A stretch of DNA of 64,000 nucleotides from Prasinococcaceae sp. CCMP 1430 (lineage: Eukaryota > Plantae > Prasinodermophyta). Below the pieces are notes generated by a model. That model was not told the origin of the DNA. It worked only from the letters and a program-made list of their open reading frames with translations, and did not search any database. The stretch covers positions 1 through 64,000 of the forward strand of contig RQSC01000006.1 in assembly GCA_013416795.1 (NCBI GenBank), in the 5' to 3' direction. The position numbers and the translations under genes were made by a program. This document shows positions 35,560 through 45,942 of the stretch, one piece after another; position 1 is the stretch's first letter, and each line of letters opens with the position of its first letter.

Positions 35560-36348
35560 GGTGGGCGGCGTCGGGACGTGTCAGGGATGGGATTTGTGCT
35601 ACTCCCAGGCCTAAAAAGCTGAGCTCGCCGCTCGCACTCGCGTCCGACCCCGTGCGTGCACCGCCACGCCGCCGCGTGCCGCCGCTGCGCCAACCTCCGC
35701 CGCCGAGCAGCCGCGTGCGAGAGCGGGCGAGCGGGCGCAGGCGCGCCAGGCGAGCCCAGGGCGCGCCGCCTGCTCTGTCGCAGGGCGCCGCGCCGCACGC
35801 CTGCGCCGCAGCCGCGCTGTGGCACTGTCCAGCGCGGCGTCCCCTCTCCCTGGCGCGCCCAGTGCTTCTCCCCGTTCCGGCCCACGTGCGCACCCCGCAT
35901 CCCCGCCCGGCCCACCTCCCCTCCCCGCTGGTCAGCGTGCCGCCAACGTGTATTCCGCCGAATCGTCCCTGCAGTTCGAATACATGCGTGCAAAACCAAA
36001 ACCGCGGAGCCGCGCGTGAAATTGCCGCGATCCCCGGGGGAACCCGATTCGGAGCACAGCGGCCGGGGGGCCAGGGAACAGCGCCGGGCGGAAATGGCAT
36101 GAGGGGAAAGGGGATAGGCCTTGCGCGGGGGAGGGGCGCAGCGCCGGCCGGCGCGCGTGCGCACTGGAAGGGCCTCTGGTGCCGGAGCGGGATGCACGCA
36201 GTGAGGTGTGGTGAGGCGGGCGGCGGGCCAAGGGCTGCCTCGCGGACAGCGTGGCTGAGCTCGTGTGGAGCTGAGGCGGCAGAGGTCGCGCAGGCGGCGG
36301 CCGCGCACCTCGGGCGTCGGAGGCGCACCGCGCGACGAAGGCGACGCC

Positions 36349-37637
36349 ATGGGCGACAGCCTGGCACAGCAGTACAAGGAATGCTGTGCCGAGCAGAGCG
36401 CGCGTGTGCTCGCTCCGATTTTGAGCGAGCTCGAGCGCGTGGACCGTAACGAGGTGCACGCCCTGCATGAGGTCAAGCTTGCGGGTAACACGCCGGAGAT
36501 GTTCGACGAGCGCGCGGGCGCAGCCGAGGCTGCGGCAGTCGCGAGCCTGCTGTGCAAAAGAAAAGATGTTGAGCTCCTCGACCTGAGCTACAACAAGGTG
36601 GACGATGAAGGCGCGGAGTCGCTGAGTGTGATGCTACGCGAGAACTCATCGCTTAAGGAGCTCAACTTATGCGGCAACCAAATTGGGCCCGGTGGATGCG
36701 CGGCGCTGTGCGCCGCACTCAGCAGCGAGGGTGGTGGTGGCGGGGGCATCCTCTTCATGGACCTGAGTTGCAACCCACTGGAAGACGACGGTGGGCGTGC
36801 GGTGGCAGAGATGCTGGAGTGCAACGACACGCTGCAGCTGCTCAATCTCTCCGACACCGAGCTTAGCATGCGCGCGCTTGTGTCTATCGTCGCGGCGCTC
36901 GGCAGCCCCAAGGCCACACTCAAGAGCATTGCGCTGGAGAATGCGCGCGTGCGCCGCCACGACGATGTGGCGCAGCACTTCGCTGCGGCGCTGGCGCGCA
37001 ACACAACGCTGCTGCACCTACGCATGGGGAAGCTTTCAATTGACGACAGCGGGCTCTCTACGCTGGTTGATTACGGCCTCGTGCGCAACGAGACGCTCAC
37101 CGTGCTCGACCTGCGCTGCAACCGCCTCACAAGCGCATGCGCGCCCGCACTGGAGAGGCTGCTCACACACTGTCCTTCGCTCGAGGAGCTCTGCCTGTCG
37201 AACAACCGCCTGGGCGACGGCGGCGCGGCCGCAATCGCAGCAGGTCTGCACCACAACACCAACCTCTCCTGGCTCGAGCTCTGCAACAACAGTGAGTAGG
37301 CGCGTGAGTGCACATCATACGTAGCCTTAGTACCCTGTGCGCACGTGCGCCCGGTGTGTCGATACGACGCATGCCATCTGACTCTATGCCTATCATTGCC
37401 GTGTGCCCGTCTCTTTGTGCAGGCATCAACGACCGGGGATTGTGTGAGCTGGCACTCTCGCTTGCCGAAGTTGAGACCAATGTGCAACACCTCGCCCTAT
37501 GGGGAAACGCCTTCGGGCAGATGGCTGCGAGGGCATTTGCGGCGGTGCTCGTCGACCTGGACCTCCGCACAGACTTCATCGTTTACGCAGACGAGGACGG
37601 AACCACCGTCCACGTGGCGAGGGGCGAGCTCTGCTGA
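36349..37637 (+). CDS. Ribonuclease-inhibitor-type LRR protein, LRRC34-like
   Basis: Repeated LxLxxNxI/L units (LDLSYNKV, LNLCGNQI, MDLSCNPL, LDLRCNRL, LCLSNNRL); intron 37292-37422; C-terminal LWGNAF...TDF; TGTAA at 37770. Confidence 0.8.
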
Positions 37638-37821
37638 GACCGGAGCATGTGCGTTGCCTGTGCCGAATTCGCCGCTGGCAGGCGCTCCTCGACACGTGCA
37701 AACCCTGCAAATGCACCCACGCGGCTCGTTGTGGGAAAAGCTCCCGCACTGAGCGTGCTCGCATTGCACTGTAAAATACATTTTCTCTCACTGCTGTTAC
37801 AGTACGCTGTGTGAACGCCAA

Positions 37822-38937
37822 TCACTCGAAGAAGGCATAGCCCATGTCGATTGAGCGCTCGAGGACGTCCTCGGCGGCCGGGAACGCCTCAACGTAGCGT
37901 GAACGCTTGCCCACCACCATGTCGCGGCGGTGCAGCGCAGCGCGAGCATTCCTCGCATCAGCGTTTGAGCGGAAGCGGACCAACGCGCTACCATTGCGCT
38001 TGCCGTTCACCAGCGGAATGTACACGTCGTCTGGTCGCGGTGGAGCGAAGCTCGCGTCCGCGTCGCCCCCGCTCGCCTCGTACGCGTCCGCAGCAGCCTC
38101 CGCCGCCCACTGGGCAATGGACGACCTATCAGCCTTGAATGGCAGCCCACGCAGCGACAGCATTTCTCCTGTGAAGTCCCCCGTCACCCGCTGCATCCAC
38201 GGCTGAAATGTGTGCCGCCACTCGTTCTGGAACTCTGAGGGTGCCGGTGGGACGGCCTCCGGGCCGACGAGCTCGGCGCGGAGCGCCTTGGACACGCGGC
38301 CACCCTTGGTTTTCTTCTCCTTCCCTCCGGCGGTCTCGACGTATGATTTGTAGCGCTGGACGGGACACTTGGACGGCACGGGGCCGATGATGCGCACAGG
38401 GATCTCGCGGATGTCGGCAACCTCAGCCGCCGCCCACAGCCGCCAGCACAGCCGCGGGGCGACGTAGTAGTTGCCGCTCTGCGAGTCCTCCCACACCTCA
38501 ATGGGCTCGCGGAAGCCGTAGCGTTGCAGCGAGTTCCGCTGCTTGGACATGCTCCTGCGGAAGTCGTCGTACTCCTCCATCGACTCGGGGCGCTCCATGG
38601 GCACCCACATGAGCATCTCTGGCGCGACCCATGTCGTCTTCTTGAGTGCCTTGGGAGCGATGCTGTGCTTGTTTCCGCGCTCGTCGACAACAGTCTTGCC
38701 CGTCGGGCGACTTGGCCGGCGCTTGGCGGCAGGAGCGGCGTAGCGACGCGCTTTCGCTTCCTCTCGCTCACTCCTCGCCGCGCCCGCCCGCCCCCCTGCC
38801 TCAGCACCTGGCGCGTCTGGTTGCGCAGCGGTGGAAACGCGCCGCGCCTGCCGCCTCGCAAGCCCGAACCCCCCGCCGCCTCTGACAGACGCGCGGTGCG
38901 CGTGCGCGCCGCGCGCTCCAGCCGCCGCGACTGCCAT
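37822..38937 (-). CDS. Transit-peptide protein with ParB/sulfiredoxin-like domain and C-terminal quasi-RRM
   Basis: A/R-rich N-terminus from ATG 38937; SLQRYGFREPIEVWED...YYVAPRLCWRLWAAAEVADIREIPVRII; LRGLPFKA...GKRNGSALVRF...RYVEAF; TGTAA on minus at 37797-37801. Confidence 0.72.
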   Translation of the reverse strand: MAVAAAGARGAHAHRASVRGGGGFGLARRQARRVSTAAQPDAPGAEAGGRAGAARSEREEAKARRYAAPAAKRRPSRPTGKTVVDERGNKHSIAPKALKKTTWVAPEMLMWVPMERPESMEEYDDFRRSMSKQRNSLQRYGFREPIEVWEDSQSGNYYVAPRLCWRLWAAAEVADIREIPVRIIGPVPSKCPVQRYKSYVETAGGKEKKTKGGRVSKALRAELVGPEAVPPAPSEFQNEWRHTFQPWMQRVTGDFTGEMLSLRGLPFKADRSSIAQWAAEAAADAYEASGGDADASFAPPRPDDVYIPLVNGKRNGSALVRFRSNADARNARAALHRRDMVVGKRSRYVEAFPAAEDVLERSIDMGYAFFE

Positions 38938-40012
38938 CCCGCGCCAATTCCCGCCCCGCTCCTTCTCCCTGCAGGCGCTCGCCTCTCCCGAGCCCCTCAC
39001 GCACCATACCGTGCGCTCCTCGGTAGGGTGCGCGCATAGGCTCGCTCCCGCTGATCGCCGGAACCCGAAAACGCGCCCCGGCAGAAAACAAAACGCATAC
39101 TGTAAAATGTCGAAATTACGATGGCTTTATCCGCCGTTTATTCGCGGTAGAGTACGTCAAATTACATCGCTTTTGCGCCCTGGCCGACCGCGCGGCTCCG
39201 CATTCGGGCGATGGGACCGCCGCGGCGCGCGCGCGCGGCCCCCGGCGAAAATAAAACGGAAATCGCACGGATTTTGATTTTGATTTGTGTGTGGAAAAAT
39301 AATCCGCGTGCGTCGCGCCCGGGAGTTCGGATCTTCCTTGGGGTCGCTTTTTTTTTGTGTGTGTGGCGACTTGCAGCGCGTGCGCGTGCTTTTTGGAGTC
39401 GTTGTCGGTTTCATCAGAAAAAAGATGCGCTCGGGCTTTTAGGAGCGGCCGTACATCGGTTCGCATGCGCCGCCGCAGCAAAGCGGCCAACGGCGGTTTG
39501 CGGCGCGCCACACCGCGGCTGCAGCTGCCGCCGCCGGGGCGGCGAGGGGCGCGGGCGGGCGGGGCGGTGCCGTGGGACGCCCGGCGTTGCACGTCCCACC
39601 TCCTGGGGCCACGCCCCTGCGCGCTGGCGCCGCGCGCTGTGTGCCGCGCCCCCTCGCGGCGCCGCGCCTTCCCCTCGCGCGCGAAATTCCTCCCGTCTGC
39701 CACTCGCACTCGTGCGCGCGTGCGTGCCGGGGGAAAAACGCCATGCATTCATTGCATCGGAGGCATGCAAGTTTGCCACGACCTGCGTGTTCTTCACTCC
39801 TCATTGCTCATCAGTCAGTGTTCGTTCGCGAGCCGCGTGAGAAGACGTCAGAATGCATGCGCAGGAGCGGCGCTGGCGGCGCCCCGTACGCGAAGAGGCG
39901 CGGCGCGGCGCGGTGCGCGCGCGCGAGGCGCGCGCGGCCGGGCGGGCCGGGCGGGGGCCTGGCGGAGGCGCTGCTGGGCGGCGGGCTGTCGGGAAACGAG
40001 TGACATGGGGGC

Positions 40013-41015
40013 CTATGTGCTGGGTCTTACGCCGCCGAGGACGGAGGCCAGCGTGGGCCACAGACACGGCGTGCGCTTCTTGTACGCCTTGTACTCCGCG
40101 TCGTCGCCCCAGCGCTTCTTCGCCGAGGCCTCGAGCAGCGGCACACCCGAGACGCGCGTGAGCAGGAAGTGGATGAAGAAGGGGCACGCCGACGCCGCCA
40201 CGGACGCGGGCAGCGGCAGAGCGGATGCCGCCGTGAGAAAGGCACCCCACCACAGGATGATTTCGCCAGCGTAGTTTGGATGCCTAGACCAAGCCCACAA
40301 GCCATGCGTGATGAACTTCTCCTTATTCTCGGGCACCCTGCGAAACGCCGACTTCTGCCCGTCGGCCACCGCCTCGACCAGCATGCCCGTAGCGTACAGA
40401 GCACCGCCGCCAATGGCGAGCACCTTAGCGAGCATACCGCGGGCCGCGAAGGTGCCCGCGAGCTCAGAGGCATCCGTGCTGTTCACCAGCAACATTGGCA
40501 GCGCGGTCACGAAAACCCACACAGCGCTGATAAGGAAGTACAGCAGGAGCATCAGAGGCCTGTCTCGCACGCGGCGAAAGCGTCTGTCCTCCCCATCGCG
40601 ACTTATGCGGCTCACGAGAAATGTTCCAAGGCGCAGCGTCCACAGCTGTGCGTCCGGTTTCCCGGTTCCAACGCACCACCGCGCGATAACACGGTGCTGT
40701 CAGCGAGGCTCTCGGCATCCGCATGCGGACGTCTTCTTTGAGCGCGCCCTTTTGCCGCGCTCATGCGTGCTCGCTGTGGCACGCGTGGGCGCGTCATCAA
40801 CGTACCGTGACCATGGCTGTACTTATTAGCTGCAGTGGCGCCGCCTTTCCGATGCCCCCGGCCCCATTGAGGGACACCGCCGCGGAGCACAGAAAAGCCA
40901 GGCTGCCAACACCATCGTACAGGCGCTCCGTCTTCGCGACAGCAGACACTGCCCAGCCCGCAAGGTGGACGAGCGCGTCAACGGCAAGCACGCCGACCAT
41001 GCCTTGCCGCGCCAT
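40013..41015 (-). CDS. DUF1295 / steroid 5-alpha-reductase-like membrane protein
   Basis: TERLYDGVGS, LWTLRLGTFLVSRI...EDRRF, EAVADGQK, GLWAWSRHPNYAGEI and SGVPLLE; intron 40646-40805. Confidence 0.9.
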
Positions 41016-44616: not shown

Positions 44617-44820
44617 GTCCGTTTTGGGGAGGAGGAGGCGCCGGCGTGCTTGTACGCACACCCTTCCTCCCTCTGCATCTACGCCGTTCTCTGTCTCCGC
44701 CTTCGCCTCTGACACCCGCGTGCTCGTGTGCATTCCCCACATCACACACACGCTCACGCGCGTACGCACACGTACACACACGCACGTACACCCATACACC
44801 ATGCGCGCGCGCGCACGCAC

Positions 44821-44957
44821 GCGCTCTCGTCCAACGACATCAAGGTACGCGCGCGCGTCTGCTTGCACACGCTCACGCACACACACTCACACACCGAGAA
44901 CACACACACACACACACCGACACACACACACACACACACATGCACACACACACACAC

Positions 44958-44988
<31 letters not shown>

Positions 44989-45942
44989 TCCGCTGACGCT
45001 TGCATTCGCGCACGCCCGCCGCCTTGGCGCCCACCAGAACGGCATGGCCATCGAGGTGGACGGCCAGCCGTGCCAGGTGGTGGAGTTCCTGCACGTCAAG
45101 CCCGGCAAGGGCTCGGCCTTCGTGCGCACCAAGCTGCGCAACTACGTCACCGGCACCTCGAAGGACCACACCTTCCGCGCGGGCGAGCCGCTCACCGCCG
45201 CGGACGTCGACCGCTCCGATCAGCAGTACTCGTACCCCGAGGTGAGAATGCGCGCGAGCGCGTATGCACACGCGCACGCGCACATACACACGCACGTGCA
45301 CGCACACATGCGCATGCACACACACACACACGTGTACGCACACACACATGTGTGTGTGTGCGTACACACGCGCACGTGCGCGCACTCGCACGCTGGGCGA
45401 CTCACACACGGACGCACACACGCGCACACGCAAACGTGCACACGCGCGCGCGCAGGGCGACACGTACGTCTTCATGAACATGGAAACCTTCGACGAGACG
45501 CGCCTCCCCACCGACTCGCTGGGCAGCGCCGTCGACTACCTCATCGAGGGGATGGACGTCTCGGTGCTCACGTGGAACGGCAAGGTCATCGGGGTGGACC
45601 TGCCCAACACGGTGCAGCTCGAGATCGCGGAGACCGAGCCGGGCGTCAAGGTGCGTTGGGTGGCGAGAGAAAAAGAGGCAGGAGTGGGCGTGTTTACGTG
45701 CGCATGCGTGCGCTGGCGAACTTAAGCACACCTACACGCACGCGTGCTCAGGATCTGACGCATGCATCACACACACACACACACATCTAACACGCAAACA
45801 GGGCAACTCGGCGACGGGCGCCGAGAAGGACGCCACGCTGGTCACCGGCAAGCGGCTGCGCGTGCCGCTCTTCCTCAACGAGGGCGACGTCGTCGAGGTG
45901 GACACGCGCGACGGCAAGTACCTCAAGCGCATCAGCTCGTGA
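44821..45942 (+). CDS. efp: Organellar (probably plastid) elongation factor P; transit-peptide exon not found
   Basis: SSNDIK|NGMAIEVDG...EFLHVKPGKGSAFVRTKLRNY; YVFMNMETFDE, PGVK|GNSA and VPLFLNEGD...VDTRDGKY; introns 44845-45037, 45242-45455 and 45651-45801. Confidence 0.93.

Follow-up and report, generated by a model that had tools for sequence, protein, structure and literature searches.

A predicted organelle-targeted protein of a Prasinococcaceae alga with a putative, degenerate ParB/Srx-like domain and a C-terminal quasi-RRM

Protein domains of the ParB/sulfiredoxin (Srx) fold are known as DNA-clamp CTPases, as nucleases, as small-molecule kinases, and as sulfiredoxin, which acts in peroxiredoxin repair and carries the active-site motif GGCHR; to our knowledge, no domain of this fold has been described that is fused to an RNA-recognition motif (RRM). 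The quasi-RRMs (qRRMs) of hnRNP F/H, GRSF1, ESRP and RBM12 form a second family of interest here, and in qRRM1 of hnRNP F the residues that shift upon G-tract binding are R16, W20, R52, R75, H80, R81, Y82, and F86 (PMC1540728). In this work we analyzed a gene on the minus strand of a 64,000-nucleotide stretch of DNA from the prasinodermophyte green alga Prasinococcaceae sp. CCMP 1430 (GenBank assembly GCA_013416795.1, contig RQSC01000006.1, positions 1 to 64,000; this whole stretch is called the window, and all coordinates are those of the window). The gene product is probably a lineage-restricted, nucleus-encoded, expressed RNA-binding factor, composed of a targeting leader, a degenerate ParB/Srx-fold domain, a conserved linker, and one C-terminal qRRM. 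The two domains are of known kinds; what is new is that they are combined, that a motif has been lost, and that the protein is confined to one small algal lineage. The coding sequence and its predicted segments are as follows.

37822..38937, minus strand: complete, intronless coding sequence of 371 amino acids (aa) plus a TGA stop, from the open reading frame list, homologue clusters and colinear RNA contigs.
38746..38937, minus strand: leader, aa 1-64, a candidate organelle-targeting peptide by its composition and low conservation.
38653..38745, minus strand: N-terminal extension, aa 65-95 (RY.AP...TVVD.RG.KHS..KAL), 60% identical to the orthologue.
38380..38652, minus strand: ParB/Srx-like (ParB_N-like) domain, aa 96-186, with the predicted order strand, long helix, strand, strand, helix, strand.
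38164..38379, minus strand: linker, aa 187-258 (SKALR.ELVGP.AVPPAPSE...EWRHT..PW..RV.G.FTG), 60% identical to the orthologue, with a ratio of nonsynonymous to synonymous substitution rates (dN/dS) of ~0.27.
37825..38163, minus strand: qRRM (hnRNP F/H, GRSF1, ESRP, RBM12 type), aa 259-371, from phmmer, an alignment to eight qRRMs, and PDB matches.
38137..38151, minus strand: RGLPF, aa 263-267, qRRM signature of the strand 1-helix 1 loop, invariant in the qRRM alignment.
37882..37899, minus strand: RYVEAF, aa 347-352, qRRM signature of the hairpin and strand 4, RY.E.F being nearly invariant in the qRRM alignment.

The open reading frame runs from the first ATG at 38937 to the TGA stop at 37824-37822, and an in-frame GTG at 39000 is an alternative start that would give a protein of 392 aa. 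Contigs from RNA libraries (three marine metatranscriptomes and one culture-type run) are colinear with 37791-38996 with zero joints, which shows that the gene is transcribed and intronless; the contig covering the gene in the culture-type run, a small run of 2015, is 904 nt long. The open reading frame is a genuine expressed gene and more than a chance reading frame. The original prediction had proposed an organellar protein with a ParB/sulfiredoxin fold and a qRRM, and all the sequence strings that it quoted were found in the translation: the Ala/Arg/Gly leader (aa 1-64), SLQRYGFREPIEVW...YYVAPRLCWRLWAAAEVADIREIPVRII (aa 136-184), and the C-terminal string LRGLPF...GSALVRF...RYVEAF, which spans aa 262-352.

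The gene was found only in two closely related species-level clusters. A word-index protein search with the whole protein returned cluster P0001 (99% identity, same species) and cluster P0002 and no other; the orthologue cluster (P0002/P0017) is 61% identical overall, has members of 431-458 aa, and is located on a TARA Oceans scaffold (L001). The same search with aa 88-200 gave nothing beyond these two clusters, an ESM Atlas search with the whole protein gave no usable match, and two metagenome scans yielded no further orthologues, so that the alignment stays two species deep. Over aa 65-371 the two species are 64% identical, with dN 0.29 and dS 0.98 (dN/dS ~0.3), which indicates that both halves of the predicted mature protein are under purifying selection, while the leader (aa 1-64) is 39% identical with many indels and a dN/dS of ~0.6. 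The neighbours of the orthologue on L001 (1821-7985) encode a guanylate cyclase, a dynein light chain, an LRR protein and a HIT/DcpS protein, and they overlap only in part with those at 36265-40615 of the window (LRR, DUF1295); local synteny is rearranged between the species.

The C-terminal assignment, hnRNP F/H-type qRRM, was borne out and is well supported by sequence comparison. In a phmmer search of 1.84 billion representatives, four proteins only (P0024-P0027) were retrieved beyond the orthologues; P0024 and P0025 are repeat-driven false matches and were rejected. The only distant relatives with significance are P0026 (E 1.6e-5) and P0027 (E 4.5e-4), which match aa 259-362 and are multi-domain proteins built of hnRNP F/H- and ESRP-type qRRMs. 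When the C-terminal domain was aligned with the eight qRRMs of these two proteins, identities of 24-40% were obtained (38-40% to qRRM3 and qRRM4 of P0026), and three motifs, RGLPF, G(K/R)xxG..-V-F, and RY(V/I)E.F, proved common to the domain and the eight qRRMs; RGLPF and RYVEAF do not differ between the two orthologues and fall in the motif columns of the alignment. A search of PDB sequences with the domain alone gave RBM12 as the best match (E 0.0037), and 11 of the 15 weak matches are of qRRM type, the matched chains being those of RBM12, ESRP1, GRSF1, hnRNP H/H', and the fly protein AT27789p. The Pfam RRM_1 model scores 18.2 bits (E 0.0023), under its 20.7-bit cutoff, as a qRRM would be expected to do; the only annotation of the homologues is the precomputed Pfam label PF28441 (RRM_11), of which we found no mention in the literature.

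In keeping with this type, RNP2 and RNP1 are non-canonical: Ser261 occupies position 2 of RNP2 (LSLRGL), and Ser317 and Leu319 occupy the aromatic positions of RNP1 (RNGSALVRF). The hnRNP F qRRM1 residues given above correspond in the alignment, in the same order, to R263, F267, K313/R314, R337/R338, S346, R347, Y348, and F352, and by analogy the predicted qRRM may be specific for G-tract RNA. R16/W20, R52, and R81/Y82/F86 of this set are RNA contacts in qRRM1 and qRRM2 of hnRNP F (PMC1540728). Also among the qRRM-type PDB matches is chain Lz of 9g6k ("mL182" of the Toxoplasma gondii mitoribosome), with E 0.27 for the domain alone and 5.9e-19 with the qRRM profile; it sets a precedent for the association of qRRM-like proteins with organellar rRNA, and the text of the source paper is silent on mL182 and RRM (PMC11652630).

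The middle domain probably represents a highly diverged ParB/Srx fold, as judged from weak matches that converge. In a protein-language-model (ESM) feature search with aa 88-200, ParB_N (PF02195) is carried by 26 of 30 named clusters (top score 0.93), and the neighbours include one cyanobacterial "putative sulfiredoxin" cluster; in PHROG, the sole family match is "ParB-like partition nuclease" (E 0.39). A tblastn search of 7.3 Gb of plasmids gave four matches, and both of those lying in the frame of an annotated gene are Pfam-confirmed ParB_N proteins, i.e., Persicobacter pPP4 ParB (L003, E 0.1) and a Marinobacter pD15-8W ParB/KorB-like protein (L004, E 0.7). The best-scoring plasmid match (H8, Haladaptatus, E 0.01) is out of the annotated frame, and it was rejected, the protein annotated there having neither similarity nor a ParB_N domain; at the fourth match there is no annotated gene. 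Among phages, ParB_N is present in one of three distinct annotated matches, the ParB-like protein of Leptospira phage LE1 (L005, E 3). Because ParB_N domains are a tiny share of the plasmid and phage databases, a chance origin of this enrichment is very unlikely by a rough estimate.

All three ParB proteins align to one stretch and in one order (the end of helix 1, G.REP(I/V).V, a hairpin, the next helix, and EIP.R), with 30-54% identity over 24-69 residues, and the orthologue aligns likewise. In hhalign comparisons, the two-species alignment matched ParB_N sets with a probability of 94-95%, and a combined profile with 95%; taken separately, three ParB_N subfamilies gave scores of 19.5, 21.2, and 22.3, each above all 60 column-shuffled controls. 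A local hidden Markov model (HMM) built from 17 ParB_N sequences scored 25.3 bits on the window domain and 13.3 bits on the orthologue, which had played no part in choosing the ParB sequences, against a maximum of 6-7 bits (7.1 for the orthologue) among 3000 shuffles. Scans of genomes and viral contigs that aimed to broaden the ParB_N profile yielded only close relatives of its seeds, and a last word-index search yielded five proteins. Modeling with AlphaFold2 (AF2) on an alignment that included ParB_N rows gave a mean predicted local distance difference test (pLDDT) score of 77, and the model is compatible with a ParB/Srx fold.

Several results weigh against this assignment. That AF2 model is partly circular as independent proof, since its alignment held ParB_N rows picked by the query; with the orthologues only, the full-length protein gave a pLDDT of 34. 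The hhalign, HMM and AF2 analyses all drew on ParB_N sequences that were the query's own best weak matches, a choice that inflates the statistics of any single comparison, and the Clostridia ParB_N subfamily alone gave only 2.0 bits, a score that 66 of 3000 shuffles reach. No ParB_N match was found in Pfam at E up to 10, whether the query was the whole protein, the middle domain by itself or the orthologue; NCBIfam and PADLOC were blank for the middle domain; PDB sequences, searched with the single sequence or the two-species profile, yielded neither ParB nor Srx up to E 10; and the orthologue's domain retrieved no ParB by tblastn. A full-length composite MAFFT alignment put the ParB fragments on the RRM and was not used for folding.

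These negatives bear on an alternative in which the middle region has no kinship with ParB/Srx and is a domain peculiar to the lineage, its resemblance (G.REPI.VW...YYV...EIPVR) having arisen by chance or convergence; the gene product would then be an RNA-binding protein that combines a single qRRM with an N-terminal domain of its own. In its favour are the blank results in all curated profile libraries and in the PDB sequence searches, the modest best E-values of the unbiased searches (0.1-3 in tblastn, 0.39 in PHROG), the failure of the orthologue to find ParB, the missing family-defining GxxR, and the need for ParB_N rows to reach a confident AF2 model. Nevertheless, weak matches from three methods and databases converge on ParB_N in one register over 50-70 residues, the hhalign scores of the three subfamilies each lie above the shuffled controls, and the low-confidence AF2 model made from the orthologues only already contains, within aa 120-173, two helices (120-139 and 162-173) that flank a pair of strands (146-150 and 157-161). 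We consider the unrelated domain unlikely and keep the ParB/Srx assignment as probable: the fold originally proposed has no support beyond the convergent weak matches and a ParB_N-seeded structure model, and direct sequence searches of Pfam, NCBIfam, PADLOC and PDB did not recover it.

The place of the catalytic or phosphate-binding motif of the family is taken by the following element.

38434..38457, minus strand: PRLCWRLW, aa 161-168 (PRKCWRLW in the orthologue), located by sequence alignment at the place of ParB GERRWR and Srx GGCHR.

Cys164 (38446-38448) is the only conserved Cys of the domain, and C164, W165, R166, L167, and W168 are unchanged in both orthologues, which read PR(L/K)CWRLWAAAE. 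Canonical ParB proteins have GERRWRA where the second helix begins, and the plasmid relatives have DGHNRWR or GE(S/H)R; in the algal domain the family GxxR motif is not conserved and no Gly is present. BLASTP pairs Cys164 with the Gly and Leu167, not Arg166, with the invariant Arg, as does MAFFT; extending the BLASTP register along GERRWRA brings Arg166 onto the first Arg. Around PRLCWRLW, hhalign and MAFFT place their gaps differently, making three registers in all. In the AF2 model that included ParB_N rows, the helix begins at residue 165 and Cys164 is its N-cap. The Cys had been said to sit at the catalytic position of sulfiredoxin, and this is right to within one residue; exact equivalence was not confirmed, three tools giving three registers. 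The Srx active site F-[GS]-G-C-H-R is not present, Cys164 and Arg166 being the only resemblance, with Gly-Gly and His absent. Features of a ParB-type CTPase clamp were not found either: the arginine patch GERRxRA is absent, and Pfam detected no helix-turn-helix (HTH) or ParB_C family after the domain, where the linker and the RRM follow in place of the HTH. From these comparisons we conclude that the predicted domain is a degenerate ParB/Srx module that has probably lost the GxxR phosphate-binding/catalytic motif.

The suggestion that the protein is redox- or nucleotide-regulated is weakened by the lack of a conserved GxxR or GCHR, the absence of Gly, and the pairing of Leu167 with the invariant Arg, and Srx-like or nucleoside triphosphate (NTP)-gated chemistry is unlikely on present evidence. 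An explanation along those lines would have the ParB/Srx-like domain catalytic or ligand-active, either as a Cys164 redox module of the sulfiredoxin type or as an NTP switch of the ParB CTPase type that gates RNA binding by the qRRM. Given that FGGCHR and GERRxRA are both absent, that Trp stands in place of His, that Cys164 is aligned to Gly, and that PDB holds no sequence-level Srx or ParB match, we regard such activity as very improbable. Even less credence is given to a special form of it, in which the domain would be a working switch, with a nucleotide site re-invented around Cys164/Trp165/Arg166 or with redox sensing by Cys164, gating self-association and thereby RNA capture by the qRRM in the algal organelle; if true, this would be the first RNA-directed relative of the ParB clamp/sulfiredoxin family. 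The mitochondrial LSU (large subunit) rRNA of Prasinoderma has unusual trans-spliced introns (PMC3873408), and a candidate role for such a switch would be in aiding them. For the predicted ParB-like domain, binding or self-association is a likelier function than NTPase, nuclease or sulfinic-acid reductase activity, and a non-catalytic role is what its sequence suggests.

The composition of the leader fits plastid or mitochondrial targeting, and an organellar location is favoured, with some reserve. Its 64 residues are 73% Ala/Gly/Arg/Ser/Pro and 18.8% Arg+Lys, and the first acidic residue is at position 41; the leader of the orthologue is longer, is similar in composition, and has no acidic residue before position 50. 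By comparison, the Pfam-verified nuclear or cytosolic proteins of the same window (CDC45, Uso1/WW and LRR) have acidic residues within the first 3-6 positions. The case for targeting is, however, made from composition alone, in a GC-rich genome (~67-70%) where Ala/Arg/Gly-rich stretches are common. The protein may instead be nuclear or cytosolic like hnRNP F/H-type proteins, its N-terminus being a low-complexity stretch of such a genome, an account that is compatible with the domain assignments: the window GC of ~67% favours Ala/Gly/Arg codons, other unverified open reading frames in the window have similar N-termini, and most of the qRRM proteins known reside in the nucleus or cytosol. We find this account possible but the less probable of the two, in view of the lack of acidic residues over the first 40 aa (the first 49 in the orthologue), the early acidic residues of the verified window genes, a leader that diverges in sequence and retains its composition, conservation setting in abruptly at aa 65, and the organellar precedents in both families: a plant Srx is named "chloroplastic/mitochondrial" in PDB 6ky4, and GRSF1 is described as mitochondrial (PMC8348895). 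One metatranscriptome contig carries an in-frame CCG insertion at 38872, which adds one Gly to the leader and agrees with a cluster member of 372 aa (P0004); this is a natural length polymorphism of the leader.

Taken together, a probable mode of action can be outlined. The fast-evolving Ala/Arg/Gly leader would direct the protein to the plastid or mitochondrion. There, on the model of hnRNP F and GRSF1, its qRRM may grip single-stranded G-rich RNA through its loops, using Arg263/Phe267, Lys313/Arg314, and Arg347/Tyr348/Phe352, with a beta-sheet that is without the RNP aromatics. The degenerate ParB-like domain would be its non-catalytic partner, serving self-association or the binding of protein or nucleic acid, and might in this way give avidity or localisation to a single RRM. 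The architecture was proposed as novel, and it remained so in every search run (sequence, ESM Atlas neighbours, literature): in the literature we found no protein in which a ParB/Srx domain is joined to an RRM and no plastid qRRM family, and no RRM is present in the ESM Atlas clusters near the middle domain. If the fold assignment holds, a degenerate version of the ParB/Srx fold has become part of a eukaryotic RNA-binding protein that is probably organellar; the latter would also be a natural single-qRRM protein from an early-branching green lineage. The reach of the finding is limited to two close species-level clusters, and the catalytic motif is gone.

The two remaining conserved segments are without a known family: the N-terminal extension (aa 65-95) has no match in Pfam, and the linker (aa 187-258) has none in Pfam or PDB. 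UGUAA is a poly(A) signal of chlorophytes, and past the gene lies a candidate for it.

37797..37801, minus strand: TGTAA, candidate green-algal poly(A) signal, 21 nt past the stop; the RNA contig X16 ends at 37791.

The GC content of the window is ~64-74%, and the other genes encode CDC45, a MutL homologue, a WW/Uso1 protein, an RNI-type leucine-rich repeat (LRR) protein, a DUF1295 protein, and EF-P. An isolated 296-nt match to eukaryotic LSU rRNA (29964-30259, plus strand; Rfam RF02543, 122.8 bits, model positions 1504-1864) sits between the MutL-like and the WW/Uso1 open reading frames, far from any full rDNA unit in the window. An open reading frame at 44624-45790 (plus strand) has a bacterial-type EF-P KOW domain (EFP_N, E 2.6e-22) preceded by a leader of ~130 aa with a (Thr-His)n run, and it is a candidate organelle-targeted EF-P.

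Among known systems, the predicted middle domain resembles the plasmid and phage ParB_N (PF02195) proteins L003, L004, and L005 in the order of predicted secondary structure and is 30-36% identical to them over 53-69 residues, from helix 1 to EIP.R. It differs from them in having PR[LK]CWRLW in place of DGHNR/GE(S/H)R, 10 extra residues in helix 1, and no HTH after the domain; it is also eukaryotic, occurs with an RRM, and falls below the Pfam ParB_N model. Sulfiredoxin (Arabidopsis, PDB 6ky4; human, 1xw3) has FGGCHR, which is missing here, gives no sequence-level match, and is without an RNA-binding domain. With the qRRMs of hnRNP F/H, GRSF1, ESRP1/2, and RBM12, the C-terminal domain shares the RGLP[WFY] loop, a strand 3 without RNP1 aromatics, and RY[IV]E.F, and with hnRNP F qRRM1 and qRRM2 it shares a helix-like C-terminal tail, which is conserved here (PMC1540728). 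It differs from known qRRMs by an insertion of 14-20 aa past helix 1, by GSA/GAA instead of GEA in strand 3, and by Ser instead of His ahead of RY. The whole protein differs from hnRNP F/H, GRSF1, ESRP1/2, and RBM12 in having a single qRRM against their three or more, and in the fusion of a non-RRM N-terminal module and a targeting-like leader. GRSF1, the mitochondrial G-rich sequence factor, is a qRRM-type protein acting on organellar RNA and offers a functional analogy for an organelle-targeted qRRM; it has three qRRMs and no ParB-like domain, whereas the algal protein has one qRRM and a putative ParB-like domain, in a putative organellar location.

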